A stretch of DNA of 64,000 nucleotides from Macrostomum hystrix (lineage: Eukaryota > Animalia > Platyhelminthes), in NCBI GenBank assembly GCA_950097015.1, contig CATNEN010000034.1, positions 5,456,001-5,520,000 on the forward strand, given 5' to 3'. Numbering within the stretch: the stretch's first letter is position 1; every line of letters starts with the position of its first letter. This document shows positions 4,301 through 32,289 of this stretch, piece by piece. A model generated the notes under the pieces. It had not been told where the DNA came from, did no database searches, and worked only from the letters and a program-made list of their open reading frames with translations. Position numbers and translations under genes: made by a program.

Positions 4301-5699
4301 GATGGTGCTGGGTGAGCTGAAATATGAGATGCTGGTGAGACGGTTCACTGTGGTTTATGTGTCAACCTTATGTTGTAATGGTTGCGCCTCGGGCTAGTTA
4401 TTTTATGCCACTTGGATTGAATTTCATTTCGCATCCCACCGCTGCCACCAATGTTAGTGAATTTCGGCAAGATGAGACGAGTACTTTTATTTACGAACTA
4501 AAAATAGCTGGTGTGCAAGAGTACCATTGCTGCGACAGATAAATAGCCGTTGGTAGTAAAACAACTCACCCCACAGGGTATAGCGTATAGGTGTACGTGT
4601 ATGTCACACATATCCGTTGTTTTACGGATGCAATTAACTTTCTAGCACACCTCCTCCAGGCATGAACATCTTTGTCGCATTCTTCCTGCTCATGCTGCTG
4701 CTCGAAGGTCAGACCCCGTCTGCATCGGACTCGTTTCCACTGATTGGTGAGTTTCCAAGAAACTGAAGTGAGCAAATATTTTCTTTTTATTGATGGTCGC
4801 ACGGAGTGTTACAATCGAATTAAAGCGCGAACAATGACCCACTCTGTCTGATTTTAGGCCAATACTATTGCCTGAACATGGGCATCATCACGCTCTCCAC
4901 ATTTCTGTCAGTCATTGTGGTCAATTTTCACTTCCGTGGCGACAATCGTCAGGAGGTGCCGCGCTGGCTGAAAAAGGTGAGTCGGAGCTACGAGCTCGAA
5001 ATACTACCTTAAGATTCTCCGGGGGCCTGAGACCATGATTGTTAGTTATTAACCATAAACCAAACAAAAAAATTTTATTATTGTTACTTCTGACTCCATT
5101 TAAACATTTTCAATCTCTTCTTGCAGTTGGCAATCGAACACGGAGCTCGTCTGTTGTTTGTCACTCTGTCGGCAAAGCCGCGACTGCCGCAGCAGCAGCA
5201 AAAGCAAGATTCAGACCTCCAGATGCAGCAGCTACCGCCAATTCAACAGCAGCAGCAGCAGAAGCAGCAGCTGCTCATCACAGCGCCACCCTACAACTTA
5301 GGCCGCATCAACGGAACTTCAGGTCCACCAGATCATTCCCTGGCCTCCTTCATCCAGCCTGGCTTCTACTCCAACTGCCCGCAGCTGCAGCAGCAGCAGC
5401 TGATGGCGCCTGCCCTGTTGGCGATGGAGCCGCTAGCCAGACGCAAGTTGAATACCCTGGCCAAGGATCTACGCGACATCGTAAAAGCCCTGCGCTACAT
5501 ACAGCGACTGCACGAGAGCAAGGAGCGAGTCGGGCGCACGGTGCAGGAGTGGCGCTCGGTTGCCATGGTGCTAGACCGGCTGTTCTTCGTCATCTACTTC
5601 ATCACCATATTCATGTCCATAGTGGTCTATTATCCGAAGGAGGGCAACGAGATTGTGCCAGGCGTCATTCCGGACGACACGCACGGAAATTCGCACTGA
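1386..5699 (+). CDS. Nicotinic acetylcholine receptor alpha-type subunit, predicted anion-selective (ACh-gated chloride channel); 8 exons, ~604 aa
   Basis: Exons 1386-1440, 2946-3361, 3585-3694, 3773-3946, 4031-4311, 4660-4746, 4858-4976, 5127-5699; all GT-AG, phases match, total 1815 nt. Signal peptide ([17 protein letters not shown]), loop [10 protein letters not shown], Cys-loop [15 protein letters not shown], loop B WTYDG, loop C YPCCPEPY with vicinal Cys, M1-M4, M1-M2 linker [14 protein letters not shown]. Exon 1 is the least certain part. Confidence 0.93.
1640..1888 (-). mobile_element. tRNA-derived SINE, family A, copy 1
   Basis: Minus strand begins GGGCGTGAGTGGAAAAGTGGTTACCGCG (A-box-like) ... 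GAGTTCGATTCC (B-box). Body is shared with copies at ~39.2k, ~60.5k and ~62.5k. Confidence 0.8.
1889..2015 (+). mobile_element. 5'-truncated, diverged family A SINE body in inverted orientation next to copy 1
   Basis: TTGAGGGCCAACC...GTGAGAGTGT...GATGAGAAA...GTGTGCTCAGGATTCAGC matches the family A body in the opposite orientation to the adjacent copy. Confidence 0.6.
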
Positions 5700-7535
5700 G
5701 CAGGTTGAGCGAGCTAGGTGTTCCTGAACAGACCGGACACCAAGACTTGGACGCAGATTTTCACTTGCTGCAGAACTTGTTTATGGATGCAAATGTAGGA
5801 AAGAGATCGGGGCACTCGTATTAAGATATTGTGATGATTCGCGATGGTTCTTTGCCCTCAGAGCCAGCTTTCGGAGGAAAAGCTTAGTTTTAAAAAAATT
5901 TGGCAATGAAAATACATTCAAAAACTACATTTTTTTTAAATCTGGAGAACTCACTTGGTCCCTCGTGACGGCTAAAGTCGCAATACAGATGCGATCTGAG
6001 TAAAATAATTTTCCATCAAGGCTCACGTTGGTCATTATCCAGCTATTTTTGCTCACACTGCGCTCAGCTCAATTAATTCTTAAATCAGGTAGAGCTGCCA
6101 ATGCACTACGCTCGTAGAAATTCACGCAAATCTGACCGGAATCCTAAATCAAAAGCACCCGCACCACCTAATTTTATTGTGGCTCTAGTATTTTCTAAAA
6201 TTCGTACAATCTGTTTTTTGAACACTTCAGGTATGACGCTGGTCACAAAATGTTTAGAGTAGACTTTTAAAACACGGCATAAGTATTGTCACACATGTGA
6301 GCGTGTGATTCCAATTTCTGTTCCGATTCGTTGTATTGCATAATAACTTTCAGTTTTATTTGATTTAATCACAGGTTGTAAAGGCTTGCAGCTCAGCTCC
6401 TTGTTGTAAAAGCTGTTGTTACCTGCCCGAAACCCCTCCTTAAGTAGCGCGTTTGCACTACCCCCTCACATTTATAAACGCTCTCTCGTGAGTAGCATTG
6501 CCCGCTGGCTAGATCCAAGCAATGCACTTTTCTTTACAGCACCACAGATGACTAAGGTTGTATGTACATTCTAAGCATTCTGCCAATGGCCCCCTTAAAA
6601 TTAGCAGATCGATGTTTGTTTAATTTCTCAACTTTCAATTTTATTATCAAGTACATACTAGGGCGTCCAAAAAAGCTTAGGGATATTTTTTATAACGTTT
6701 TCCACAACCAGCAATAATTACAGCAACTGATGTATTTCACTGTGGCTTAATATCACCAACTGTTAAAATTATGTTGCGTAATCGTTTTCACTCGCGTACC
6801 TTGCACGAGAAATGTTTCTTGGCTTCTAACTACTAATAACTACGTAACTTAGTAGACAGACGATAATATAAATTAGTAAAGAACTGTTTCTCCTGTTGTC
6901 TTTTATCTCCCAAAAATAACTGCCTATTGGCCCATGTGGCTCACAGGATTTTTCCATAAGAATGCCCGCATCTTCCATAGCCGCAGTTGCGAGTGCTGAA
7001 TCTTCTTCTGAAGTTTAAAATGGGAGTCGCCGGGAGTCCTGCAGGCAAGCTAGCTAGTTTAGAAGACTTTCTTGGAAATGTAATTTTACGGCCGATGCCG
7101 AGGCCGATACAATTTTATCCCTGGTGGTACGATGGGAGCAGGAGAGAGGGCAGAAGGGAAAAATAGGATTTTATCCGAGCTAGTTGCAAGAAATAGACAC
7201 TTTAAGAATAGTCAGTTTCACAAAGTTCGCGCGAGTAAATAATGTATAACGCATGCGTTTTAAATGAATAACACTGACCTGCGCCTACTGTGAGTAGTCA
7301 GTCAGCATTTGTTAAAACATGTGAAAATCTAAACAATAATAATCGTTATGCATGAATCTGAAATAAGAAAACTTCTGCGCGATGAGTGGATTCTAAAAAA
7401 TACATAGACATCATATTGTAAAATATTGCGTGCACACGCTATATAAAGCAGGACATTGAAGAATTTTAATTGATGACACTTGAGTACAGCATGTGCGCAG
7501 TGCACCAATTTTGCACTTTGCAGTTTGTGACCAGC

Positions 7536-13500: not shown

Positions 13501-16500
13501 GAGAGATAGGAGAAGGGGAGAAAGAGGGATAGGAGAAGGGGAGAAAGAGGATAGGAGAAGGGGAGAAAGATGGATAGGAGAAGGGGAGAAAGATGGATAG
13601 GAGAAGGGGAGAAAGATGGATAGGAGAAGGTAGAAATGAGGCACAAACGGAAATCGAGGGTTTAGTGGAAAGTTAAAAAGGAAAATGAATGATAGTCATA
13701 GTCAGGAGTGATATTCATACGAACACAGATCCATGCGCCTATAGCTGGTAAACCAGCGATGAAGAGGCGGGGTTACAGAGAGTAGGAAGGGAGATGTAGG
13801 CAGAGGGCGCGGTCCAAGGTATGACAGCTGACAGAATCGCGTGCGATATCCCAAAAAAATTCCGCGAAACTTAAATGTGTTTTAGAAGGAATTTATGCAT
13901 GTCAGGGCTAGAAATGAGGCAGGCAGGGCTTAGGGGAACATTTAATCTGGGATCAGAGGTTGGGGTTGTGCGGGGAAGGACGTTTGCAGGGCGAGGGAAA
14001 ACCATATCAAAGTAAATTTTCGTAAAATTTTACACTCGGTTGCAGCCCTACCTGACTCTGAATCTGGTTAATTAGGACTCGCATCTCCGTGTCGCGCTTT
14101 GTCTCATTAACGTAGGTGGCCACATCGCACATGGCATCGTGAGCCGACTTCAGCAGGTCTTTGTCTTTGCCGCCCTCCTTCCTATCGTAATCCATGAGGC
14201 TCTTTACAAGCAGGTGGTATCTGTGGGTCAGTTGAAATTCAGCACAATCATCTCTGTTCTCAAATGTCCTTGGGATCACATTTTCAAAATATCCCTGGGA
14301 ATATCTTTGGGAAGTCTGTTCTCAAATATCTTTGGGAAGTCTGTTCTCAAATATCTTTGGGATGTCTGTTATTAAAATATCCTTAAAATCTAAGTCTATT
14401 CTCAAAATATCCCAGAGATCTCTGTTCTCAAATATCTTCGATGGATGCCTTTTCTCAAATATCTTTGGGATGTCTGTTTTCAAATATCTTTGGGATGTCT
14501 GTTCTCAAATATCTTTGGGATGTCTGTTTTCAAATATCTTTGGGATGTCTGTTCTCAAATATATTTTCTTTGGGATCTCTGTTCTCAAATATCTTCGATG
14601 GATGCCTTTTCTCAAATATCTTTGGGATGTCTGTTTTCAAATATCTTTGGGATGTCTTTTCGCAAATATCTTTGGGATGTCTGTTTTCAAATATCTTTGG
14701 GATGTCTGTTCTCAAATATCTTTGGGATGTCTGTTCTCAAATATCTTTGGGATGTCTGTTCTCAAATATCTTTGGGATGTCTGTTCTTAAATATCTTTGG
14801 GATGTCTGTTCTCAAATATCTTCGATGGATGCCTTTTCTCAAATATCTTTGGGATGTCTGTTTTCAAATATATTTGGGATGTCTGTTCTCAAATATCTTT
14901 GGGATGACTGTTTTCAAATATCTTTGGGATGTCTGTTCTCAAATATCTTTGGGATGTCTGTTCTCAAATATCTTTGGGATGTCTGTTCTCAAATATCTTT
15001 GGGATGTCTGTTTTCAAATATCTTTGGGATGTCTGTTCTCAAATATCTTTGGGATGTCTGTTCTCAAATATCTTTGGGATGTCTGTTTTCAAATATCTTT
15101 GGGAAGTCTGTTCTCAAATATCTTTGGGATTTCTGTCATTAAAATATCCTTAAAATCTAAGTCTATTCTCAAAATATCCCAGAGATCTCTGTTCTCAAAA
15201 GATTGCAAAAATGCATAATTCTTGAACGATCTCGAGCAGCGCAGACCTCAGCACCCGCTGCATAGGCACAGCCAGGTATTCGCTGAGTTTGAACTGGCCT
15301 TTAGCCGCTGCGAGGTGGCGCTGAACTTCTTCCTGACGCCTCTTATCCGATCTGCAGGCGTCCTCCAGCAGTGAGATGGCCTCGGTCATGTGGGCGCAAT
15401 AGGAGCCGTACAGCAGCAGCTGGTCGTGATAGCCAATCAGAACGGTCGGCAGCGGCTTGGCACCGCGCAGCTGGGTGGCGACTTCCAGTTCGCGAAGCAG
15501 CTTCCGGTGCAAGCTGAGCAGCTCTGGCAGGTGCTCAAAGATAACGTCAACTTCTACCGGAGTCCACGACGACTGCGGTTCCTGGGTGGATTAGGATTGG
15601 GATCTTAGCTGGATTTTAGTTTTTGTAAGTAGGATTTGAGGATAGGGATTCACACAGGATTTGTGTTTTGTGAGTGGGATTTGAGGATTGGGATTCACAC
15701 AGGATTTGTGTTTTGTGAGTGGGATTTGAGGATTGGGATTCACACAGGATTTGTGTTTTGTGAGTGGGATTTGAGGATTGGGATTCACACAGGATTTGTG
15801 TTTTGTGAGTGGGATTTGAGGATTGGGATTCACACAGGATTTGTGTTTTGTGAGTGGGATTTGAGGATTGGGATTCACACAGGATTTGTGTTTTGTGAGT
15901 GGGATTTGAGGATTGGGATTCACACAGGATTTGTGTGTTATAGGTGGGATTTTAGGATTGGGATTTCAGCAGAATTTGTGTCTTATAGGTGGGATTCTAA
16001 ACTATCAACAGTTATGCGAAAAAAAGCGAAAACTAATTAAAGCTTGCAGCAGCACTAGCCTTGGGTGTAGCTCGTTGGCCTAGCGGCAATGTTAATCCTC
16101 CTAAAGTGCTTGCTCGCATGCTTAATTAGCTTGAAAAATGCCTGATTAATCCCTCATTTGATATTCTGAGTCGTTGAGTAAAATCTTGGCTTGCATTTTC
16201 TGTAGGAAGTCTCCATTTTTTATTGTCTATGGCCACAGATCCTAAAAGCAACATGGAACTGGGCGAGGCAAAGCTGATGTTTGTGTTATAATACACATTT
16301 AGGTTGCTAGGCAACTAAACTGGTCGATTTTCGCGTGGTTTCGAATAGTTAGACTATAATTCAGATAATTGCATTATGCACAGCTAATCGGGTTACTATT
16401 TGAATATTCTTTCTAACTAACTAATTTGCTTAGACTAGAGAAAAAAGTTGATTAAAACAAATTTGAAATCCCATCCAGGTGATTCTGTGTACACAGTCAC

Positions 16501-17882
16501 ACAATTCTACTCGTAGGCTACTGCTTAAACAATTTCCTCTAGCTATAGCTAACCATACTAGAGCTTGGTAGAGTTACTCAAACACACAGAGGGAAAATTG
16601 TAGTTCGTCAAGTTTAGTAATGATGAAATAAATTTCCTAGAAACGAAGAGTACACGCGTCAGAAGCAACTCACCTTCATCGGGCGCATAACATCTTCAAC
16701 AAGCAGTTTCAGAGTCTCAACGTAGGTCTTCTCCGTAGTGACTAGCTCCTCCATGCAGATCTCTTTGGCGGACCTTTTAGCATTGGCATCCCTGCTAGCT
16801 TGGCCATGGGTTCGATTCATGATGCTCTCGTACACTCGCTCGGCTGCAGCATCGACATAGTGGGCGGTCTCCGGAGCTGGAACCGACAGGAGTGCCGGTT
16901 GCTGCTGCTGCTGCTGCTGCTCTTGACTCTTCTTAGCAGTAGCTGTAGCCATCAGGTTACAATAATCCGACGAGAAATCTTCGCTAGCACTGGCCTCTCC
17001 GTTGCTAGTGGCAACAGTGAAGCCGGCTATGCCGCTCTGCTTAGCCCTGGGACTATTGGAGAGCAGAGACAAGGTGCGAAAAATGCGGCCGACATTCTCC
17101 TGGCTGAGCAGATCGTCCGGCGCGAACAGGTCGCTTGACGATAGGCCAAACTCTGTCTGGCAGGCTGACAGGAACAAGGACAAGTTTTGGCGGAAGGCGA
17201 ATTGCGAATTCAGCGTGGCCATTTTGAAGCCCGGCAACTGATCTGGCGTGACCTGGCAATTTCAATTCGGATGAATCTTTGCAGGTTTGTCTCAAGACTA
17301 GCACAAGCAATTACCATGAGGTGGTGGCTGTGTTGGGGTGGTGGCTGTGTTGGGGTGGTGGCTGTGTTGGGGTGGTGGCTGTGTTGGGGTGGTGGCTGTG
17401 TTGGGGTGGTGGCTGTGTTGGGGTGGTGGCTGTGTTGGGGCGGAGGCTGTGTTGGGGTGGTGGCTGTGTTGGGGTGGTGGCTGTGTTTGGGTGGTGGGTG
17501 TGTTGGGGTGGTGGCTGTGTTGGGGTGGAGGCTGTGTTGGGGTGGAGGCTGTGTTGGGGTGGAGGCTGTGTTGGGGTGGAGGATGTTTTGGAGTGGCAGC
17601 TGTGTTTGGGTGGTGGCTGTGTTGGGGTGGTGGCTGTGTTGGGGTGGTGGCTGTGCTAACCTGCTGGCAGCTGAGTGCGGGCAGGATGTGGCACAGCAGC
17701 ACGCCATCAGTGAGGCAGTTCAGCAAGTCAACAACAGTAGCGCCCGGCGTGTCGATGAGCACAGACTGCGCCTGAGCCAGAATGTCCGGGCTGGTGGACA
17801 GACAGCGGAGCAGCCAGTCGGCACACATGCGCCACTCTGCATCAGCGCCGCCGTGTTTATTATTAGCCAATAGCGACGCCAT
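7536..17882 (-). CDS. VAV: Vav-family Rho/Rac guanine nucleotide exchange factor (CH-acidic-DH-PH-C1-SH2-SH3); 7 exons, ~902 aa
   Basis: Exons (minus) 17882-17661, 17237-16674, 15581-15247, 14220-14052, 10439-9800, 9064-8605, 7854-7536; total 2709 nt, phases match. CH domain (EWRMCADWL...LTDGVLLC, QFAFRQNLSLFL), DH (ELVTTEKTYV, YLAVPMQRVLRYHLL), PH (DYGRL...FLWTRMFML), C1 (CTVCNKLIHGCFFQGYKCRKSGHTVHKQC), SH2 (GTFLVRES, SNSLRECFSELD), C-terminal SH3 (GLFPADSV). Confidence 0.95.
7897..8586. repeat. Minisatellite, 46-bp unit, ~15 copies (Vav intron 6)
   Basis: GGATGGTTATCTGTCACACAATGAGCTCACACAGCAGGCAGTGGAT in tandem. Confidence 0.95.
9190..9780. repeat. Minisatellite, ~49-bp unit, ~12 copies (Vav intron 5)
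   Basis: GCAGGGCTGCCTGTTCCATGTGGGTTAGACATGCAGGGATGGTTCAGGGTT in tandem. Confidence 0.95.
10486..11855. repeat. Minisatellite, 25-bp unit, ~54 copies (Vav intron 4)
   Basis: GATACGATTCTA(A/G)CTACGGG(A/T)TCCT with period 25. Confidence 0.97.
13110..13630. repeat. Degenerate purine-rich tandem repeat (~21-23-bp units) in Vav intron 4
   Basis: GGAGATGGGGAGAAAGAGGCAGA units grading into GGATAGGAGAAGGGGAGAAAGA units. Confidence 0.85.
14255..15200. repeat. Minisatellite, 25-bp unit, ~35 copies, with higher-order duplications (Vav intron 3)
   Basis: CAAATATCTTTGGGATGTCTGTT(C/T)T in tandem; a ~60-bp variant block recurs at ~14371 and ~15139. Confidence 0.95.
15600..15990. repeat. Minisatellite, 45-bp unit, ~8 copies (Vav intron 2)
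   Basis: GGGATTTGAGGATTGGGATTCACACAGGATTTGTGTTTTGTGAGT in tandem. Confidence 0.95.
17317..17656. repeat. G-rich minisatellite, 17-bp unit, ~20 copies (Vav intron 1)
   Basis: GGTGGCTGTGTTGGGGT in tandem, starting a few nt inside the exon 1 donor. Confidence 0.95.
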
Positions 17883-20159
17883 TCATTGATGTTTCGAAAA
17901 TAGCTAAACCAACCCTGTGCTGGCTTGCCGTAGATAGCTAAACACGAGCTGCAATGCCGCGAAAAAATGTTTGGTTTTAGCAGAAAATTCGTTTTATCCA
18001 TCAATTAATTTTCCTAATCTTCACCTAAGGACACCTGTTCTAAAGCCCTATTTTAACCAACTTGATGTGATTTATGATTGATCGCGTAAGCATTCCTACC
18101 CCGTCGAAACACCCACCTCACACCCTAGCTAATGTGATACGATTTCTGATTGGCCGGGTAAGTATTCCCACCCCTTCGGGGACACCCACCCCACGCCACC
18201 TGGTGCTCATGGGCTAAATTTAGTTTCCCACGCTTTTTAATTGTTTACCTGACGATGTGAATATATATTTGTTGATTGTCGGCTGTTCGCTAATTTATTG
18301 CAGAGGTTTGGCTAATTTAATTTATTTGCCTAATGTGCTAGCAGTTTGGGCAAATAACTGACACCTAATACACTTTTGGTCTTTCAATCAAGGACAGGTA
18401 AATGGGGCTATATTTTTTATGTTACAGGCAACATTTAGGTCGTGTACTAGTCGATACTCATTGGATATTTCTCGCTTGCTCTATACATAATCTATTGGTA
18501 TTATTCTATTATATGGATTTCTAAAGTAATTAGCTATCATAATAAGTAATTTTCTGCTCTAGCCCTTTGTATTTATTGAATGGCTAAGATATTGCAGGAA
18601 TAAATACACTTTTGCAATAATCAATTCGAATTAATTATCTAAAAGTTAAACAGCCTTCAAACACTAAGAGCTAGATATTTGATTGGCATTTAGCTAAGAT
18701 TTTTTAATTTAAGAGACTTACTTAAAATATGCTGACCTTAACCGACCGCTGCTAAAAATATTCAGAGAGAGAGAGAGCTGGAGGGAAGCAAAATAAGTTG
18801 AAGCGGAAAAACACTGGATAGCTAAGCAATGGTGATCGGTTATCAACAGTGAAATAGCGGGCATGAGAGGGAGGAGGAGGGGGAGAATGCGGAAGACGAG
18901 TTGCTAGAACCGATAGGCAGGGGGCATTGGACGAAACTGGACAGGGTGGGTGAGATGGGACGGAATGGGCAGAGGAAAATAATCCTACCCGCATGCCATT
19001 GAATATGATTATTGATCTATCTAATGCTAGAAATATTTAACCACGAAGCAGGTGTCGCAATGATTTTTTAAAATTCATTCTTTATATTGATTTGTTCTAG
19101 GAGAAAGTAAAAAGTGACTGGATTTAGAGTTGAAACAGAAACAAAAAACTGGCAGAGCTAATGAAAGCATTAGCCCGAGACGGGAAACAAGAAAACTTTG
19201 GTCGCACCCAGTTGCATCCGGTTAAAGCACCGTGGGGGAAGTCGATTCTTAAATCCTGAACAAAAAAGGTGAAATAGCATCAGCAGCAGCAGCAGCCAGT
19301 AGACTTGGCTTGAAGCATCGAAAGGGAGAGGGAGAGAGAGAAAGAGGAGGGAACAGGAACAAGCCGTGTGTAGGTGTGCAATAACAGACCCTTAAAACAC
19401 TAATGACGGTCCATGCAGAGAATCGGGTAGAGGTAGAGGTGGAGAGTTAGGGGTAGATAATTCATGCGCTTTACCAAGGCCAGCACATAAAAACACAGAA
19501 TACGGTGAGTGAAGCGGAAGCGACTGCCGCAGTTCCATCCGTACCACATTTCATGCCATAATAAGCCTTAGACCACTAATTCCCTTATCTAATTTCTCTC
19601 TGGCATGGGGCAGTTGGTAAGCACACAGTATTGGCTTATATGCACAACATTTAGATTCATACACGGAACGATAATAATAAGAGCATTAGCAGAATTATCA
19701 AGTAAAAATATAAATAGCCAACCCATTCTGTACCTGCCTTATCTATTCATTAATATAGCCTTTAAAGTACAAAGTCATCAGTTATAAAAAATTAACGAAA
19801 TAAGAACACAATTGAAGAACAGGTTGGGGAAGAACAGCTAATATGAAAAAACGAAAAATTTATATTTCGATTGTTTGCTTTCTTAACAATTTGAGAGAAA
19901 CTGTCAGCTTGCAACTGGATAAACAAAACATTCACAGCATTATCGATGCTATACTGATAGAGCAAACTAACAACAGCTGGAGTGAAGAAACATTGTTTTT
20001 TTATGAACCGAGATTTACTTATGGCGCAACCAATTCATAAAAAAAGGAACTGAAGTTAAGCTTGTATTATTTCTCATCAATAAGCAGACAAAATGATTAA
20101 GTGTCGCTCAGAAAATTTATAGTGTAAAATAATATTACATTTGATTTCACTTGCTTCAT

Positions 20160-20920
20160 AATTTAATAATCCTCGCCTGATCAGTTGATAGTTTGATAAT
20201 CCTCGCCTGATCAGGTGATAGTTTGATAATCCTCGCCTGATCAGGTGATAGTTTGATAATCCTCGCCTGATCAGTTGATAGTTTGAAAATCCCCACCTGA
20301 TTAGTTGATAGTTTGATAATCCCCACCTGAACAGTTGATAATTTGATAATCCTCGCCTGATCAGGTGATAGTTTGATAATCCCCGCCTGGTTTGATAGTT
20401 TGATAATCCTCGCCTGATCAGGTGATAGTTTGATAATCCTCGCCTGATCAGTTGATAGTTTGATAATCCCCGCCTGGTCAGTTGATAGTTTGATAATCCT
20501 CGCCTGATCAGTTGATAGTTTGATAATCCCCGCCTGGTCAGTTGATAGTTTGATAATCCTCGCCTGATCAGGTGATAGTTTGATAATCCTCGCCTGATCA
20601 GGTGATTGTTTGACAATCCCCACCTGATCAGTTGATAGTTTGATAATCCTCGCCTGATCAGTTGATAGTTTGATAATCCTCGCCTGATCAGTTGATAGTT
20701 TGATAATCCTCGCCTGGTCAGTTGATAGTTTGATAATCCTCGCCTGATCAGTTGATAGTTTGATAATCCCCGCCTGGTCAGTTGATAGTTTGATAATCCT
20801 CGCCTGATCAGTTGATAGTTTGATAATCCCCGCCTGGTCAGTTGATAGTTTGATAATCCTCGCCTGATCAGGTGATAGTTTGATAATCCTCGCCTGATCA
20901 GGTGATAGTTTGATAATCAG
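20160..20920. repeat. Minisatellite, 30-bp unit, ~25 copies (intergenic)
   Basis: TGATAATCCTCGCCTGATCAG(G/T)TGATAGTT in tandem. Confidence 0.95.
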
Positions 20921-21582
20921 ACAGTTTTAGCACAAACGGATGAAAGCATGGTGTGCATGCGTGTGAGGTGGAGAGAAAGGTATACGCTCGTATAAGCACA
21001 TAAGTACACTAGCTTGGTTAGGAATACTACACAAACATTAGTTAGTTGAATTATTAGTTTAAATTATAATCGCTTGGCAGCAATGCGCCTAGAAATGATA
21101 GTTAAAGCAGAAGTATTAAGGACACAAAATACGAGTAAAGTATGCTAAATATGTTCCCTAATTGTCCACAAATTTTATGAAAATCACAAATTCAAAAGTG
21201 AGCGAAATCTTGCAAAGATCAGATAGGCTAAAAACTGTCAGAACGATAAACCGGTTGAAACTGATGTCTAAACAGAAAGCTGTTGTTACACACGAATTAG
21301 CTACGGAATGAAATACAACAACTGCACTAATCCTATTTTTTAGGCGGATGAAAGTTAGTTTGTAACGCCACTAGCTTACAGTCCGAGATAAAGTAAGAGA
21401 GCCCCAGTGTAAACTACCAGAGGATTGATCAGGAGAGTGACGGGTCACTACCTGAGGATTAATGGGGTAGAAGTAAAGCTAGCGGCAGAAAAAAACTAAA
21501 GAATAAAGAAAAATAAACTTTGAGTTGAACATAAAAGAGTCACAGAGGCCCCATGCTACAGCAGCCAGCCTGGCACAGACAA

Positions 21583-24500
21583 TCAGCAGTTAGCTGGCAT
21601 GTAGATCGGATTGTGAAATGAGGTCCCGCCGAGGCCGCCGCGCGGAGTCAAGCCAGTCGTAGCGTCCAGATTCAGCTGCGGCCGGTAGCCGGAAGCCCAG
21701 CGACTGCGCGACCACAGACGGAAGCCGATGACGGCGAGGCCGGCTAGAGCGGCGGCGCTGCACAGGGCTAGCACGACGGCCAACGCCACGGAGACAGAGG
21801 AGTAAGCGGCCGAGGCCGAAGATGTCGGGCAAGTCGGAATTCGGCAGTCGACAATTTGCAGCTGGTGTCCCAGTGTTCCAGAAGCGAAGCAAACGTATTT
21901 TTTGCCGACGCCCGCGACATTGCGGCAGTAGGCGGCCGCTGATCCGACAGTCTCGTTATCCAGCTTAGCGAATGTGGCCGCAGTCAAGTTAACAGCTAAA
22001 TCAGCGGCAGCTGCAGTGGCAAAGGCTCCTCGTCCGCCAGCTGACTGGCTAATCGCCAAGGCGACGTCCCAGCGAGCGCAGACTTGACCGTCGGCGCCAG
22101 TCGATACAAGTTTCCGATCACGATTACAGTTGGCATCGGCTTCGTCGAGCGCCGTCGTCGTAGTGGTTTTCAACTGACTGGGGAGCTGAGCTGGCAGCTT
22201 GCAGACATAGGGAAGCAGGTCGGTGCATGCCTTTGCCGCCAGGAGGCCCCAGCCGATGCTCAAGGCGAAGCACTCGGAGGAGTCGCTGGCTAAATTCAGC
22301 CGACCGAGAGCCGATGCCGGGTAGAGAAGGTCGGAGCGGACGGGCCGGTTGGAAGATCGCCAGGTCCAGGAGCAGTCGGCTGAACGACAGCTGACAGGGC
22401 TGCGCTGAAGGCCAAGCCAGACGGAGGCATTGGCAGTGTCGGATGATTGCAGCGGTATGAGAGCGGACCGGAGGTAGTGCAACTCGGCTGCGGCCTCACC
22501 GGAGTCGGCTAGCTCAAGCAGGACAGCGCTTTTATTGCGGCACGCAATGGACGCGTCGGCATAGTTGGCGGCAGCTACGCTAGTGTAGTAGCAGTTGGCA
22601 TTGAATATTACGAAGCCTGGCGGACAGCCGACACTGGCGGCTACGGCGCCTGAGCTCTGATTTCCTTTTAGGCGACAGAGCGGAGGGAGATGGGTAGAGC
22701 ACGGACTGGTGCTCAGGTGACCGGACAGCCACCAGTAGGGACTGCTGCTCAGACGAACGCAGTCAAATCTCTGTACGAATGAGTTAGATCCGGATCGGGT
22801 TTGCTAAAAGCTAACAGGATTTGGCTATGAATGTCAGAAGGAAATGCGGCTAGTTACTAGGACCATTGGGAAGGAGAAGGAAGAGGCCAGTTTCAAGGAC
22901 CATTGGGTAGGAGTAGGAAGAGGCCAGTTTTAAGGAACATTGGGAAGGAGTAGGAAGAGGCCAGTTTCAAGGACCATTGGGAAGGAGTAGGAAGAGGCCA
23001 GTTTCAAGGACCATTGGGTAGGAGTAGGAAGAGGCCAGTTTCAAGGACCATTGGGTAGGAGTAGGAAGAGGCCAGTTTCAAGGACCATTGGGTAGGAGAA
23101 GGAAGAGGCCAGTTTCAAGGACCATTGGGAAGGAGTAGGAAGAGACCAGTTTCAAGGACCATTGGGAAGGAGTAGGAAGAGACCAGTTTCAAGGACCATT
23201 GGGTAGGAGTAGGAAGAGGCCAGTTTCAAGGACCATTGGGTAGGAGTAGGAAGAGGCCAGTTTCAAGGACCATTGGGTAGGAGAAGGAAGAGGCCAGTTT
23301 CAAGGACCATTGGGTAGGAGAAGGAAGAGGCCAGTTTCAAGGACCATTGGGAAGGAGAAGGAAGAGGCCAGTTTCAAGGACCATTGGGTAGGAGTAGGAA
23401 GAGGCCAGTTTCAAGGACCATTGGGTAGGAGAAGGAAGAGGCCAGTTTCAAGGACCATTGGGTAGGAGAAGGAAGAGGCCAGTTTCAAGGACCATTGGGT
23501 AGGAGAAGGAAGAGGCCAGTTTCAAGGACCATTGGGTAGGAGTAGGAAGAGGCCAGTTTCAAGAACCATTGGGTAGGAGTAGGAAGAGGCCAGTTTCAAG
23601 GACCATTGGGAAGGAGTAGGAAGAGGCCAGTTTCAAGGACCATTGGGAAGGAGAAGGAAGAGGCCAGTTTCAAGGACCATTGGGTAGGAGTAGGAAGAGG
23701 CCAGTTTCAAGGACCATTGGGAAGGAGTAGGAAGAGGCCAGTTTCAAGGACCATTGGGAAGGAGAAGGAAGAGGCCAGTTTCAAGGACCATTGGGTAGGA
23801 GTAGGAAGAGGCCAGTTTCAAGGACCATTGGGTAGGAGAAGGAAGAGGCCAGTTTCAAGGACCATTGGGTAGGAGTAGGAAGAGGCCAGTTTTTAAGGAC
23901 CATTGGGTAGGAGTAGGAAGAGGCCAGTTTCAAGGACCATTGGGAAGGAGTAGGAAGAGGCCAGTTTCAAGGACCATTGGGTAGGAGTAGGAAGAGGCCA
24001 GTTTCAAGGACCATTGGGAAGGAGTAGGAAGAGGCCAGTTTCAAGGACCATTGGGTAGGAGTAGGAAGAGGCCAGTTTTTAAGGACCATTGGGAAGGAGT
24101 AGGAAGAGGCCAGTTTCAAGGACCATTAGGTAGGAGTAGGAAGAGGCCAGTTTCAAGGACCATTGGGAAGGAGAAGGAAGAGGCCAGTTTCAAGGACCAT
24201 TGGAAGGAGAAGGAAGAGGCCAGTTTCAAGGACCATTGGGTAGGAGAAGGAAGAGGCCAGTTTCAAGGACCATTGGAAGGAGAAGGAAGAGGCCAGTTTC
24301 AAGGACCATTGGGTAGGAGTAGGAAGAGGCCAGTTTCAAGGACCATTGGGTAGGAGAAGGAAGAGGCCAGTTTCAAGGACCATTGGGTAGGAGTAGGAAG
24401 AGGCCAGTTTTTAAGGACCATTGGGTAGGAGTAGGAAGAGGCCAGTTTCAAGGACCATTGGGAAGGAGTAGGAAGAGGCCAGTTTCAAGGACCATTGGGT

Positions 24501-27500
24501 AGGAGTAGGAAGAGGCCAGTTTTTAAGGACCATTGGGAAGGAGTAGGAAGAGGCCAGTTTCAAGGACCATTAGGTAGGAGTAGGAAGAGGCCAGTTTCAA
24601 GGACCATTGGGTAGGAGTAGGAAGAGGCCAGTTTCAAGGACCATTGGGAAGGAGTAGGGAGATGCCAGTTGACCCTTAGGATTGGTGTAGGTAGCGCCAA
24701 ATGTTTAGGTAAGTGGCGTAGACAAATCTTATGATATGTCAACGAGTATGTCAACGAAGTCATCGAATTACATAATGATCAATAATTGCTATTTATTTAT
24801 ATAAATATAGCGAATCGGACAATTTTATTTCACTTTATGCCGCTACAGCGCGTATACAAACAAATCTCTCATTACATTAAAGTTTGTTTATGAAATCAAT
24901 TGCTTTAATTTGAATATGAAAGACGACAAAAGGTTTCCTATTTATTATATACTACTGCAACTAAGCAGACCTAAGTAGTACGAAAATTAGGCTCGTGCTA
25001 CTTAGGCGATTAGGCTAATGAGGCTAGGTATCACACATGTTTTTTGCTGCACTCAAGTCTGAAATATATAAAAAAATTAATCATAGAGTGCAACGATGTA
25101 TACATATTCATTTGTTGAACAAATTGAACAGAAAGTTGCTACTAGAAACTGGCATGAAAACATGGTACATAAGATCAGTGGTGTGGTAGATGGTATATAA
25201 CATGACAGTTGAAATAATGACGGGTGAAACAATGACAGGTGAAACTATGACAGGTGAAACTATGACAGGTGAAACTATGACAGGTGAAACTATGACAGGT
25301 GAAACTATGACAGGTGAAACTATGACAGGTGAAACTATGACAGGTGAAACTATGACAGGTGAAACCATGACAGGTGAAACTATGACAGGTGAAACTATGA
25401 CGGGTGAAACAATGACGGGTGAAACAATGACGGGTGAAACAATGACGGGTGAAACAATGACAGCTGAAACTATGACAGGTGAAACAATGACGGGTGAAAC
25501 AATGACAGGTGAAACCATGACAGGTTAAACCATGACAGGTGAAACTATGACGGGTGAAACAATGACGGGTGAAACAATGACGGGTGAAACAATGATAGGT
25601 GAAACCATGACGGGTGAAACAATGACGGGTGAAACAATGACGGGTGAAACAATGACAGGTGAAACTATGACAGGTGAAACTATCACACGTACAGAATTAT
25701 CAGTTAAAGTTGATCATGCTAAGCAGTCACCAATGTTCTAAAATCTAAAAGCAACTGATGTAAATCAGACTTACCTCAACAGCGGTAAACGTAGCCCAAT
25801 CGACGCTCTCTAATGAACTTTTATCGGACCAAATATAAGTGCCGTTATCAGCATTTTCGCTCAAGCTGAGCCCAATCCAGGCAGACGAGGCTTCGCTAAT
25901 TGACAGCAGGCTAGCCATTCGCTGCAGCTGCCGCCTAGTCTGAAAGGAAGCCAGTCTAGCTCCAGCATTGGCGCAGGCCTCTTCCGCTTTTTTAAAGGCT
26001 CCAGCACGGTCCTTCAGCAGGCGATAACACGCGGCGTCTTCTGAACTGGCAGACACCCAACCAACCGGACAGGTGTGTGTGGTTGCGGACAAAGAATTTG
26101 AAGAACTGCTAGTCTTAATGGGGATTTTGAAATTTCGAATTCTTTTGCAAAGAATCGGTAGCTGAGCATTGCAGGTCATTGTAATGAACCTGCCAGGATA
26201 CTTTGAACTGTTCCTAGCGTCCATAGAAACGCACAAAGGCCCGGCTAGGCGAACTGTTTGATCTGGCGGATTCTCCAAAGGCGCGAAGTTGACAAATCGC
26301 ATGGCGGTACCATCAGACCAGATTGAGAAGGCGTTAGCAACTGAGCTTGACTCTGTACTAGCGCCTAGCCATACCAACTCAACAAGTTTAAACTTGTATA
26401 AAAAGTTTAACGTCGCATTCAACTCAGCGAGCGAGGTAATAGAGGCTGGTTCGCTGTCGGGCAGAATAACTTGGCATTTGCTCTTGGCCTCGTGCCAAAC
26501 AGCCTCACTGGCTAAAAATGCATAGTCCACGCAGCCGCCAGGTATGGCCATAGACATGGACATATTGCCAGAAACTTCACTCAAGCTGCAGTTGCTACCA
26601 TTACTGCTGCTGGCTGTTGTCTGCGGCGACGATGTCGATGGAGCTGCGGTACTACTTGGACTAGTAGTACTAGCTGTACTAGTTTTAATAGTAGTGCTTG
26701 TAGTCGTAGTAGTAGTGGCAGTCGAAGTTTTAGTGGACGTAGTCGAAAGCACTCCAGGCACCTGGCATATGAAGGAATGCTTCTCTGTGCACACTTCCGT
26801 TGTCCATTCGCCGTATTTTTGCTTCATCAAAACGCACATTTTTTCAGTTTCAGACATGTTAAGCGGCAGCTTTGGATTGTTGTGACGGAACTGAAAGAAC
26901 TGTGCGCTAGTACTATCCGACCAGGATAAATGCTGCTGCAATTCGCTGTTCCGCACCGTCAGACCGATCCAAGCGCTGTCCGCTGATTTCAACAACTCAG
27001 CTAAGTACAGCAGCTCCTGTCTACTGTGAATACTGGCTAGGCTGCCATTTCCGTGCAGCTTCTGACAGCCGGTTAGGGCTTCCTCCCAGTCAGCATTAGC
27101 AGACACAAATTTGAAGCACTTTCCATTGATAGCGGGCGTGTTAGCATCTGGACAGAACAACTCTTGACTTTTATTGGGCGACATAGGGTGCTCCACAAGG
27201 GTGTAGCGGCAGGCCATCATTGGATTTGTGTCATAGCACAGCCTGGCCTCTAAACTGTTGGACTTGAGCACTAGCGAGGTGCATAGTTGGCCAGCATCAT
27301 CAGCAGCATCCTGGAATTATGTGAATGTAAGAACATTAGACCACAAATAAGCTTTGTTTCTGTCTTCAAATACGATGATTCGTCACCCCAGCTAAGTTGC
27401 ATGTTTTATATCTAGCACACTATCAAAATCTTTCTATTTTCTGGCCACGAGAGCTCGCGACCTTGGAACACGTGTTCATTTAATGATCGAATAAGACTGT

Positions 27501-29504
27501 TAGCGAATTAGCGATGAATGCGACGAACCAATGAGAGCTCGCGACCTTGGAACACGTGTTCATTTAATGATCGAATAAGACTGTTAGCGAATTAGCGATG
27601 AATGCGACGAACCAATGAGAGCTCGCGACCTTGGAACACGTGTTCATTTAATGATCGAATAAGACTGTTAGCGAATTAGCGATAAATGCGACGGACCAAT
27701 GAGAGCTTGCGACCTTAAAGCATGCGCTGTTTGAATGATCAGTAACGAGTAGAAATCAATGTGAGAAACAAGCCTTCGTTTTAAAATACAGATTTCTATC
27801 CAATTCTATAGCCTCAGAAAATGTAATACATGTATTACCTTAATAACCTGACTTGGCAGCTGCTTCCAAACGTAGTCATAATCTGCCGAGCTACCATCGA
27901 ACCAGGTTAGCAACGTACCGTGGTCGTCAACAGTCACATTGAGTCCAAGCCAGACTGAAGCGTCAGTGTCCGGACTGACAATGCCCAGCTGGTCGGCCAG
28001 GGCGGAAATAAAAGCCTGTTCACCGCGATGATGAAACAATGCCAGAGTGGAGCCATTGCGACTGGCGCATTCGGCCAGAATCTCGGCTCTGGTGCCGTTG
28101 ACATGGGCGTCCAGAAGCCAGCAGGCGTCTTCGAATGCGTAGAATCCGAGAGCGCAGCGGTGGCCAGAGGCGTCTTGGTTAACTCCGATCGTCAAAGGAG
28201 CGGCACCTTTGATGTCCTTGCTGGCTGGCGCTTGACACAAAACGGACGGGAATCGGTCGGCACACGGAACATTGTTCCATTCGCCTGCAGAATTGGATCG
28301 ATAGAATCAGTATGAGTATAGACTATTCAGGATTCAATATAGAGAATAGAAATGCATCTAACTATCCCACTCCACAGGTGAAACTAATTGTTGCTATGCA
28401 GATCTAGGTAGCATCACACTCAAGGGATGGAAAGATTGTTGCTGTGCTGATTTGGATATTAATGCATTCCACAGGTAGAAAATTCATTGATATACGCTTT
28501 CAATACACCTTAATAAATAAGAAATCCTATTTTGAGAACTGCTGTTATGCAAGCATCATATTGAGTCAGCCAACCATACCTAAGCTGGCCTCTCGTTGGT
28601 GTGCCACTACGCAAGCCTCCTGTTCAAACGGCCTAGACGGTTCGTTACTCTTCCAAACGCTGTGGCGCATTTCAGTGTTATTATCATGCCAGGCCCAGTA
28701 CTTTCCGTCCTGATATTCCAATCCGATCCAGGTGTGGCCCAGGGCCTCGGCGCTAATCAAGGCCGTAGCGAGGAATTCAGTATTGAAATCGTTGACAACG
28801 GCTAGGCTTGCTTCTCTGGACCAATTCCGACAGGCGGCTAGAGCGCCATCGCGATTCCATCGAGCGTTAGCTAAGTCGGGCGAGTTCAGCACCTTATAGC
28901 ATAGGTTGCCATGCAGTGTGGCATTGAAACCAGGGCAGCGCAGTTGCTTATCTAATGGTACAGACGGTTGAAATGGTGACTCCAACGGCTGCCTGGCGCA
29001 TAGAGACAACTGCTTTTCTGAGCCGTCAATAAAACTCAGTTGAAGCTGCTGATTCTCGACAGTTAACTGTAGCGAGCCGTATTTGCCATTGAAGCGACTC
29101 AGTGCAGGGGTCATGCCTGGCAACTGGGACATGGACAGATCGGTATAGTCGGCATCTAGCCAGCGAAGTCCATTATTAACAACACTAGCTCCAGTCCAGA
29201 AGCTGATTGTACCGTTGTAATTCATCTTAGTCGCAGCTGCTATAAGCGTAGCGGTTAATTTTTGATTGAATCGACTATTGCGCAATAACACCAGCTTGCT
29301 ACCGTTGCCTAGCGACAGGCAATATTGCCTGGCTTTGGTAATATTTGAAGGTGTCTCGACAATGCGCACACAGTCGGTAGGACCAACGGCCAGCCATTCA
29401 GACGGGCAGGCCAATGGTGCTCCTAATGAGACGCCTTCAGCAAATGGCAGAGGCGTACAGGAAACGAGCAGGCCGGCTAGTAAACTCAAAAGCATTGTAG
29501 ACAT
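21583..29504 (-). CDS. Type I membrane receptor with 7 C-type lectin-like domains, a Ser/Thr-rich linker, a kringle-like domain, TM and NPxY tail; 4 exons, ~1361 aa
   Basis: Exons (minus) 29504-28580, 28284-27848 (an alternative donor 9 nt further is possible), 27310-25775, 22770-21583; total 4086 nt, phases match. Signal peptide MSTMLLSLLAGLLVSC. CTLD motifs (CPSEW, WIGL x3, VWLG x3, WSDG, EWNNVPC, C-terminal C-x7-8-C). Kringle pattern CARW...YCRN...VCF...DCRIPTC. TM VALAVVLALCSAAALAGLAVIGF. Tail FHNPIY. Confidence 0.92.
22855..24660. repeat. Minisatellite, 37-bp unit, ~48 copies (lectin receptor intron 3)
   Basis: GGACCATTGGG(T/A)AGGAG(T/A)AGGAAGAGGCCAGTTTCAA in tandem. Confidence 0.97.
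25215..25685. repeat. Minisatellite, 15-bp unit, ~31 copies (lectin receptor intron 3)
   Basis: ATGAC(A/G)GGTGAAAC(T/A/C) in tandem. Confidence 0.95.
27449..27720. repeat. Tandem repeat, 84-bp unit, ~3.3 copies (lectin receptor intron 2)
   Basis: GAGAGCT-starting units at 27449, 27533, 27617 and 27701; near-identical. Confidence 0.9.
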
Positions 29505-29580
29505 AGTTATGAAGAGAGAACAACAATCAAAGCAACAAGATAAACAAAAAGCAACAGAAATTATTCTCGATTAGACGCGA

Positions 29581-31203
29581 TTAGGCGAGATCCTCGTCGT
29601 CGAAGAGATCTCCAAAGTCTGAAACATGCAGTCGGACATAAGTAACTAATTGATTGAGCTGATACTTTTATTAACTAATAAGCTCGTAGGGATAAATAAA
29701 TCGCTATTGTAGATGGCAAATGCATACTATCAGAAGTACAAAGTCTAATCAATAAGCAAGAAAGGGAATATGATGATAAATAGGGGATTGAGATGGCTAA
29801 AAAGGGAATGAACCAGAGAAAAAAGTGCACTCTCTCTAGCAAACTGCGATTCGTCTAAAATTTAAAGCTCACCATTGTTAAAGTCAGAGTGGACAATTTT
29901 CTCACTGCTAGGATAGTCGAAAGCAAGGTTTCCACTGCGGCCACCGCTGACCTGTGTAAAGACAAAATAATTTTCAGTTAATTTGGAATATTAGAGCACT
30001 AAATTAATTGCTATTTATCTAATATTTTATAACTTGGTATATATTTAGTATTTTATTCAGTCGATTTAGGAAAAAGAGCAAGTCAAAAGTTTTATTTTAG
30101 ATCTAAAAAATCTGAAAATCATTCAATATTTAAATATGTAATAAATGTGTAGCTACATGATGCCTGAATATACTCTTTTTGCTAGCTATATTAGTAATTT
30201 GTGGTCTTGATCCTCTACTAATTAAAATACTGGTCTCTTGATAATCCACATTTTACTTTTGAGGTCAACAGTTCAAAGATGGCTGTGTTTTGCAACCCTA
30301 AAAAGAAAAAAGACAATCAAAGTTTGTAGGTTTAATTTAAATTAATTTTACAACAGCAGTTTAAAAAACTTTGTTATATGAAAAAAACAATAACTAATAA
30401 CCAACAAACAACTCCAACAAGCACTGAGATGTCATAGTAATGCACTCAGATAATGAAGTCCAGTGCCGCCTAGAAAAGAATATTGACAAAGGTGTTACCC
30501 TCCTGCTGTTTCTTTTCCCTTATTGGCTTTGGCTAGTGTCATACCCACACTGCCACATTTGGTTTTACCATTTTGGCTATAGACCTACATATCAATGAAC
30601 TGCCATCATTTTTGAAACTCAAATAAGTTAATTTAATAGTAACTTTTTAAAAATAATAATGTAACAAGTGACTGATGACTAGCTAGCTATTCCAATTTCT
30701 TAAACAGACAAGTCACTAGGCCCTAGAGGAAAGTCACAAGAAACAGAACAACTGATATTGAGATAGTAACCAATTCAAAATATACATTTTAAATTCAAAT
30801 AAAAGTCTTTTTTGTTTAAGCTGTATATAGGCCCTACTACATTTAGCCAAGCTAATATATAATTAAAAAACTTAGATTAAAAACCTAGTCCTTAGCAAGC
30901 TAGCATTGCCTAGCAATAGGCCCTACCTGTATGGCAATAGCTCAGGCAAGCTGGGTCTAGTGGATAAACTGAGATTTTTTACAAAAAGTAGGCAAACAAC
31001 AAATTTCCAGGTCTATTTAAAGCATTCTTGAGAAAGTTGTTAAAGTGGTATCCAAAATAGCTTAGGCGAAAACAAGTTGAAAAGCAAACTAAGCACATCA
31101 TTGTGATGGCTCAGGCTTGTTTGTGAAAGCCTACCTCTGCAGAGTTATCAATTTCGCCCATTGGATCATCAGGAAACATTTCATCAGTTGGCTTATTAGA
31201 CAT
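29581..31203 (-). CDS. COPS9: COP9 signalosome subunit 9 (CSNAP/MYEOV2-like) acidic microprotein; 3 exons, 61 aa
   Basis: Exons (minus) 31203-31135 (MSNKPTDEMFPDDPMGEIDNSAE, donor GTAGGC), 29951-29873 (VSGGRSGNLAFDYPSSEKIVHSDFNN, acceptor TTTTGTCTTTACACAG, donor GTGAGC), 29618-29581 (DFGDLFDDEDLA*, acceptor TGTTTCAG). The product carries the family hallmarks as I recall them from human CSNAP: N-terminal DEMFP and C-terminal EK-x-VH-x-DF-x-NDF-x-DLFDD. Not in the ORF track because every exon is under 30 codons. Confidence 0.92.
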
Positions 31204-32289
31204 TTTTTTCAAAGTAATTTTATATCAGTAAAAAGTCCCTAATTTTGTTAATATCGTTTTAGTAGGCCTAGGCTACGGATATCTGGTTAGCTGTAATGTG
31301 CCTAAAATTCAATAGGTTATATGCCTAACTGATGATGTGTTAGGGCTTAGGCTACAGCGTCTGCTGCTGTATATATTGTATTTTTTACAATAAGAGGAAT
31401 ATACTACTTTGCAAAGCAATATTAACGTAATTCAGTAGGTAATACACATTTATGACGAAAAAAACTCTTGTCAAAATTACTTTTTAATTTTTACTCTTGA
31501 AATTTCTTGAAATCAAATCGATGAGATAAAATTTTTGCATCCTGTTGGGTCGGCAAAGATTAACGAAGAAAGGACACGCACTTTATGTTGTATCAAGATT
31601 CTAGTAAAAAAATTGTATACCTTAAATATTTTTTATTCACGTTTATTTAATCCATTTTTAAGTACAATAATGCTTTGTTAAAAACTTTAAGTCGACGGAT
31701 TATCTGGCTAACATAATTCATTAGTAGCGTAAATTAACTGCTACTGAAAATATAATCTTGCTTGCTTGATTGGTTGTAATTTATTTTCTCCCGAACGGCT
31801 CAACCGATTTTCACAATTTCCTCACCAAAATATGTCAAATATAGGGACACATATCACATATGCACGTATTTTATTGAGCTTAACTTCGATCATTGCTAAG
31901 GGGATTAAATATTCGAAAAATGTTTTGGATAGGATTTTTAATGCATTCAATCAGAGCCAGTTTTATCAACGTGCGAACCACTGCCAATTTTAATGATTGC
32001 GCCAGGGCCTTCTTTTTTAAAGTGAGCACACTAACAAGAATTTCACTGTGCCAAATGTACATAGCTGTGTCTGGCGAGTGGCGAGATAGTCAGTGTGAAT
32101 TTATAAATATATTACATCACAGCTTGTCTCACACGTGTGTGTTTTATTTAAATAGGGGTACAATGTGTATAGCAGACTTCAATTCATCGATATATTGCTC
32201 AATACAAGCGAGACATCTACTCCTTTCTTACTACAACATAAATAAATCAGTAACCTTGTCTCAACTTCACTAAAAAGAGTGCAGTCGAA

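Follow-up and report, generated by a model that had tools for sequence, protein, structure and literature searches.

We analyzed a 64,000-nucleotide (nt) stretch of the genome of the flatworm Macrostomum hystrix (assembly GCA_950097015.1, contig CATNEN010000034.1, positions 5,456,001 to 5,520,000; hereafter the window, whose numbering is used throughout), in which the gene for COPS9, a subunit of the COP9 signalosome (CSN), is followed on the minus strand by the gene for a C-type lectin receptor. The two genes are probably co-transcribed, whichever mechanism then releases the receptor for translation; this is well supported because RNA contigs run from COPS9 exon 1 into the receptor and because a very short spacing is kept in M. 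lignano. The initial annotation had proposed one shared transcription unit, and our results support that general view. It had offered two mechanisms, namely (a) a dicistronic mRNA and (b) spliced-leader (SL) trans-splicing at the acceptor of COPS9 exon 3; the co-transcription behind both holds, and neither mechanism is demonstrated by the contigs. We give about an even chance to the reading that COPS9 and the receptor form a conserved two-gene operon of the Macrostomum type, in which the receptor mRNA is resolved by SL trans-splicing.

Organization of the COPS9-receptor locus

The COPS9 stop codon (TAA, 29583-29581) had been placed 76 nt upstream of the signal-peptide ATG of the receptor (29504) on the minus strand, and all of these coordinates proved correct (Table 1). 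The spliced COPS9 coding sequence (CDS) comprises 61 codons in three exons, separated by GT..AG introns at 31134-29952 and 29872-29619, with the junctions taken from spliced RNA contigs. Its length and its C-terminal end, DFGDLFDDEDLA, agree with what is expected of COPS9/CSNAP (about 57-61 amino acids with an acidic, Phe/Asp-rich C-terminus), and we take this end to resemble that of the human COPS9 protein. In an exon-by-exon scan against Pfam, exon 2 alone matched MYEOV2 (PF15004) with E=0.0087 and 16.9 bits, below the cut-off of 27 bits, and the exon 1-2 part of the M. lignano gene matched the same family with E=3.7e-5 and 24.5 bits, also below the cut-off. Exon 1 alone gave no Pfam match, and a word-based protein search with exon 2 gave no match. 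COPS9 is single-copy in the 220-Mb assembly. The receptor has four coding exons with repeated C-type lectin domains.

Table 1. Features of the COPS9-receptor locus. Positions are those of the window unless an M. lignano locus is named; X4 and X5 are RNA runs described in the text.
Feature	Position	Strand	Evidence and remarks
COPS9 exon 1	31135..31487	-	5' untranslated region (UTR) of at least 284 nt; CDS 31203-31135 (23 codons); contig ends, donor at 31134 and translation
COPS9 exon 2 (79 nt)	29873..29951	-	contig joints 31135/29951 and 29873/29618 (X4, X5); Pfam match
COPS9 exon 3	29581..29618	-	12 codons, DFGDLFDDEDLA (29618-29584), then TAA 29583-29581; preceded by acceptor TGTTTCAG
Spacer, 76 nt	29505..29580	-	T 39, C 13, G 12, A 12 (51% T); covered without break by X4 and X5 contigs
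Sole AG of spacer, candidate SL acceptor	29566..29567	-	context ATCGAG; the M. lignano spacer likewise has one AG, identically placed relative to the stop
AATAAT, candidate variant poly(A) signal for COPS9	29560..29565	-	putative function
U/GU-rich tract, candidate downstream element for the COPS9 3' end or polypyrimidine tract	29511..29559	-	putative function
Receptor exon 1: signal peptide and first C-type lectin domains	28580..29504	-	Lectin_C 2.3e-10; contig joint; 55% identity to M. lignano PAA88097.1
Receptor exon 2	27839..28284	-	contig joints; tblastn
Receptor exon 3	25760..27310 (low end approximate)	-	contigs, tblastn; Lectin_C 1.8e-30, three stretches
Receptor last exon: lectin domain, transmembrane segment, NPIY tail	21583..22780 (high end approximate)	-	Pfam, tblastn
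M. lignano COPS9	L016: exon 1 3018-~3086; exon 2 ~4853-4931; exon 3 5915-5949; TAA 5950-5952
M. lignano, downstream of COPS9	L016: AATAAA 5952-5957; receptor ATG 6001		AATAAA overlaps the stop codon; 48-nt spacer

RNA evidence for a probable shared transcript

RNA contigs came from four runs, two from one study carrying the same organism label (X4 and X5) and two from a second study of close relatives (X1 and X2). Such contigs show RNA over every base rather than one molecule; overlapping transcripts can merge in them, and minority forms such as SL-joined ends can drop out. In X4 and in X5 the locus was covered by a single contig without mismatches (4573 and 5335 nt, respectively). Each contig contained COPS9 exons 1-3 in spliced form, crossed the spacer without interruption to reach receptor exon 1, and continued through the receptor splice junctions; judged by their lengths, both extend past the receptor stop. 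X1 and X2 yielded fragments only, in which COPS9 exon 1 and the pieces of the receptor had similar per-contig depths (10.1 vs 2.6-5.8 in X1 and 5.1 vs 2.3-7.4 in X2). The contigs began at 31487 (X5), 31480 (X2), 31465 (X1) and 31338 (X4), and none carried an SL loose end at the COPS9 5' end. For this reason the COPS9 mRNA looks conventionally capped, with a long 5' UTR, and not trans-spliced.

Conservation of the gene pair in M. lignano

An exhaustive protein search with receptor exon 3 recovered one collinear orthologue, M. lignano PAA88097.1 (Mlig019801.g1), with 42% identity over that exon. A word-based search with this orthologue returned only itself, and in the literature no paper was found that names Mlig019801. 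The g1 numbering in the M. lignano annotation was also considered and carries no weight either way. The initial annotation had suggested comparing the spacing in related species, and we found the same gene order with a 48-nt spacer at two M. lignano loci, L016 and L017, which are identical at the COPS9-receptor junction; a third copy (L019) is a C-terminal receptor fragment, with no 5' part within 10 kb. The peptide encoded by COPS9 exon 3 is identical in the two species. The COPS9 introns, by contrast, cannot be aligned between the species and are of unequal length (254 vs ~980 nt and 1183 vs ~1770 nt in M. hystrix and M. lignano, respectively), and the next gene on the same strand, a Vav-like (CH-RhoGEF) gene that follows the receptor at the same position in both species, is about 3.5 kb away in each. 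Because the close spacing of COPS9 and the receptor (76 and 48 nt) is kept while the introns have diverged and the next same-strand distance is so much larger, comparison of the two sequences argues that this spacing is beyond chance.

Candidate processing signals in the spacer

The spacer had been described as free of ATG, AATAAA and ATTAAA, with AATAAT as the sole near-signal, and this was confirmed. There is one AG, as reported, at nt 14-15 of the spacer rather than 13-14 nt after the stop; the 20 nt preceding it are 60% pyrimidine. The M. lignano spacer likewise lacks ATG and has exactly one AG, at nt 14-15 (TTTGAG), with an AATAAA 9 nt before it and an ATTAAA further on; the U/GU-rich tract differs in length between the species. 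The spacer is indeed short, as the initial annotation stressed in seeing little room for both a 3' end and a promoter. The initial annotation overlooked that the AATAAT and the GU/U-rich tract after it resemble an ordinary COPS9 3'-end processing site. TATA-like A/T hexamers are present in the spacers of both species.

We estimated what chance alone would give from composition-preserving shuffles of the spacer and of the 114-nt leader that would result from trans-splicing at the exon-3 acceptor. Shuffled spacers were ATG-free in 35% of cases and had at most one AG in 39%, and shuffled leaders were ATG-free in 16%. An ATG-free, AG-poor spacer is not beyond chance; we rejected it as a sign of selection, and the argument built on it is further weakened by an ATG within exon 3 in M. 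lignano. The spacer RNA was no more structured than its shuffles (z=+0.59), and Rfam gave no match near the locus.

Upstream of the receptor ATG the two species share only two AG sites, the weak AG of the spacer and the strong acceptor of COPS9 exon 3. The latter, TGTTTCAG (AG at 29620-29619, minus strand), matches in both species the SL-acceptor motif [T/C]TNCAG reported for M. lignano (PMC8629364). A leader starting at 29618 would be 114 nt long and ATG-free, and the AUG of an SL joined there would open a frame of 16 codons, both as initially stated; in both species an SL AUG at either site would open a short frame that closes before the receptor ATG. Sites beyond the spacer were also considered. 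Trans-splicing in M. hystrix at the first AGs past the U-rich tract (29486/5 and 29478/7) was rejected, since the mRNA would lose both receptor ATGs and be left with an SL AUG in the wrong frame. M. lignano has two sites with a pyrimidine tract and CAG just after the annotated receptor ATG (L016:6001-6040), TTCAG and then the homologous CCCCAG, each of them in phase 0. With the SL AUG joined at CCCCAG, the protein would begin MTPRGAISLL..., and its signal peptide would be more typical than the annotated one of 39 residues; this is a lead for M. lignano only.

Spliced-leader genes in the genome

SL RNA genes, which an SL-resolved operon calls for, are present in the genome. The exact 35-nt SL of M. 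lignano has 23 mismatch-free genomic copies, and in the one copy that we inspected the leader sequence leads into a GTAAGA donor, with an Sm-like site and a 3' hairpin beyond. Canonical SL RNA genes were located on C15, C17 and C42 (e.g. L006:1400-1535, minus strand), in arrays that repeat about every 11.6 kb. A second family forms a tandem array of at least 20 copies with a period of about 927 nt (C39:12667884-12685526; L020:87-205). Its variant leader is also 35 nt long; it has three substitutions relative to the canonical one, all close to the 3' end, and retains the terminal ATG. Downstream of it are a GTAAGA donor, the Sm-like sequence ATTTTTG and a 3' hairpin. In addition, dozens of SL-like copies with 2-3 mismatches are scattered through the genome, for instance a family whose leader ends in ...GCATA, and these dispersed copies may be pseudogenes or SL-derived repeats.

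A possible SL-resolved operon and its alternatives

In the operon to which we give an even chance, transcription would start upstream of COPS9, near 31490, with COPS9 itself not trans-spliced, and the primary transcript would continue across the spacer into the receptor. The COPS9 mRNA would be cleaved and polyadenylated inside the spacer, guided by AAUAAU and the GU/U-rich tract (in M. lignano by the AAUAAA over the stop codon), and SL trans-splicing would free the receptor mRNA, with two candidate AGs ahead of the receptor ATG, that of the spacer (29567/6) and that of the acceptor of COPS9 exon 3 (29620/19). COPS9 3'-end formation would compete with receptor trans-splicing for each precursor, because both would take place within a few dozen bases. 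An SL-resolved operon is the commonest solution in the genus. It is favoured here by the unbroken X4 and X5 contigs, the comparable depths in X1 and X2, the SL RNA genes, the short spacing in M. lignano with its equally placed single AG, the fused M. lignano gene models and an exon-3 acceptor that fits the SL motif in both species. Same-strand distances in M. lignano operons are short (<1 kb, with an intergenic mode of about 100 bp), and here the distance from stop to ATG is 76 nt; moreover, 18% of the operon-assigned genes of M. lignano sit in operons headed by a gene that is not trans-spliced (PMC8629364).

Several observations weigh against this operon. In both species the spacer AG has G at position -3, and it lacks a preceding pyrimidine tract, making it a poor acceptor, and the M. 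hystrix spacer has no canonical AATAAA. The exon-3 acceptor has a cis donor upstream, a situation that according to the literature favours cis-splicing. The initial annotation had proposed a search for SL sequence joined at 29618 or within the spacer; the contigs of the four runs contained no such end and no SL-bearing end anywhere in 26000-31600, contigs being able to drop minority forms. Finally, the continuity of the RNA across the two genes is read from contigs in which overlapping transcripts can merge.

We explored the possibility that the receptor is translated from a true dicistronic mRNA, capped and polyadenylated, that carries both open reading frames (ORFs) without any trans-splicing, ribosomes reinitiating 76 nt (48 nt in M. 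lignano) past the 61-codon COPS9 ORF. The contigs of both deep runs, which extend without a gap from the 5' UTR of COPS9 past the receptor stop and have no SL branch, fit such an mRNA, as do the similar depths of COPS9 and receptor in X1 and X2, the shortness of the upstream ORF and a spacer that in both species lacks ATG and offers no good acceptor. However, reinitiation is usually efficient after ORFs shorter than this, and 61 codons are long for it; the lack of ATG is at chance level; the spacer holds no structured element; poly(A)-signal-like hexamers lie at or just past the COPS9 stop in both species, where cleavage would part the two ORFs; and the abundant SL mechanism of the organism makes reinitiation unnecessary. 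We therefore regard a dicistronic mRNA as possible but on the whole doubtful. A shade more doubtful is its full form, in which a conserved, capped dicistronic mRNA without SL would yield the receptor by reinitiation past an ORF for a functional CSN subunit, the operons of the animal being otherwise resolved by trans-splicing. Leaky scanning, which had been suggested along with reinitiation, is ruled out by several ATGs within the COPS9 CDS.

Two independent, overlapping transcripts merged by the k-mer assembler would also account for the contigs, given that a contig across two genes does not show a single transcript. The receptor would then start in the spacer, in COPS9 exon 3 or in intron 2, and COPS9 would be polyadenylated slightly downstream; the TATA-like hexamers in the spacers of both species and the lack of SL in the contigs would fit such a start. 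Against it, the short spacer has been kept despite unalignable introns, pointing to a constraint tied to co-transcription; the promoter would sit within COPS9 coding sequence; and no contig had an alternative receptor 5' exon or an unspliced extension of intron 2 into exon 3. We consider independent starts unlikely.

It is very improbable that COPS9 and the receptor are made as one fusion protein, with the exon-2 donor cis-spliced to an AG in receptor exon 1: this junction occurs in three UniRef models of M. lignano and an in-frame equivalent AG exists in M. hystrix (29478/7, phase determined by hand), but the joint is absent from the contigs of all four runs, the acceptors are weak, and the fusion would delete most of the hydrophobic core of the M. 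hystrix signal peptide. The three models in question (older, ML2-based; A0A1I8J6P7, A0A1I8HJW9 and A0A1I8J8B0) join COPS9 exons 1-2 in frame to the receptor (...DFNN/GAISLL) and are probably an annotation artefact, most simply explained by a gene predictor that linked two ORFs because the RNA coverage over them is continuous. The locus is in this respect an annotation hazard, with COPS9 fused to the receptor in the older M. lignano models and no separate COPS9 protein turning up in the protein collection searched.

Comparison with known systems

Returning to the SL-resolved operon, its closest counterparts are the SL operons of M. lignano (PMC8629364, PMC5730564), which belong to the same genus, use an identical 35-nt SL and likewise place same-strand neighbours well under 1 kb apart. 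As at the head of some of them, the first gene of the pair is apparently not trans-spliced, and RNA is continuous over both genes. Unlike them, the pair has a stop-to-ATG distance of 76 nt (48 nt in M. lignano) that is below the usual distance of about 100 bp between the upstream 3' end and the SL site, no [T/C]TNCAG acceptor in the spacer and no SL on the receptor contigs. The pair can be regarded as a conserved addition to the known Macrostomum operons; it is odd in its spacer, which has neither the length nor the acceptors that the usual layout needs.

The SL1-type operons of C. elegans and the operons of the tunicates Ciona and Oikopleura reportedly have no intercistronic region. As in these, the upstream poly(A) signal and the candidate downstream acceptor at our locus are bases apart, and the two processing events would compete. 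The candidate acceptor here is, unlike theirs, a weak GAG, and both the poly(A) site and the trans-splice site are putative.

Animal dicistronic mRNAs with a small upstream protein include stoned and Adh-Adhr of Drosophila and mammalian SNURF-SNRPN. COPS9 and the receptor share with these a short, conserved upstream ORF encoding a real protein, a long ORF close by and continuous RNA. They differ in that the organism has SL trans-splicing, a process absent from those systems, and in that continuity is read here from contigs.

An acceptor shared by cis- and trans-splicing, which the initial annotation had considered unusual, appears less so in light of a survey of parasitic flatworms, where cis-splicing occurs at an average of 66% of SL acceptor sites, least at operon-resolving ones (PMC12582326). 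Mechanism (b) would add one more acceptor used by both a cis donor and the SL. At our locus the shared site would be the acceptor of the last coding exon of the upstream gene, the exon becoming 5' UTR of the downstream one.

If the pair is an SL-resolved operon, it would be one more among thousands of M. lignano operon genes and in itself of little consequence, while offering a clean case of 3'-end formation and trans-splicing sharing fewer than 80 nt. If dicistronic translation, or a leader at the acceptor of the last COPS9 exon, should prove true, the locus would be a compact, conserved test case that is genetically tractable because transgenesis exists in M. lignano. It could then reveal how a flatworm chooses among cis-splicing, trans-splicing and polyadenylation, and also if ribosomes reinitiate after a real coding ORF.

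Receptor domains and neighbouring features

The name initially given to the receptor includes a kringle, but Pfam scans of the last exon and of the M. lignano orthologue gave C-type lectin domains only and no kringle. A word-based protein search with receptor exon 1 gave no match. A distant paralogue of the receptor, with 30% identity, lies elsewhere in the genome as an intronless ORF of 1064 codons (C11:2779961-2783155; L015:3962-7156, minus strand), and a TTTCAG acceptor is found about 100 nt upstream of its ATG.

Repeats occur within and beyond the receptor gene. A minisatellite with a 15-nt period (25108-25528; VSPVI... on the minus strand) lies within the 3-kb third intron, and a tandem repeat of units of about 30 nt (20077-20950) starts about 650 nt past the receptor stop; judged by its length, the X5 contig ends near the start of the latter. 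Minisatellites and a proline/histidine-rich coding repeat (14332-16040 and 17187-17882) are located in or near the Vav-like gene.

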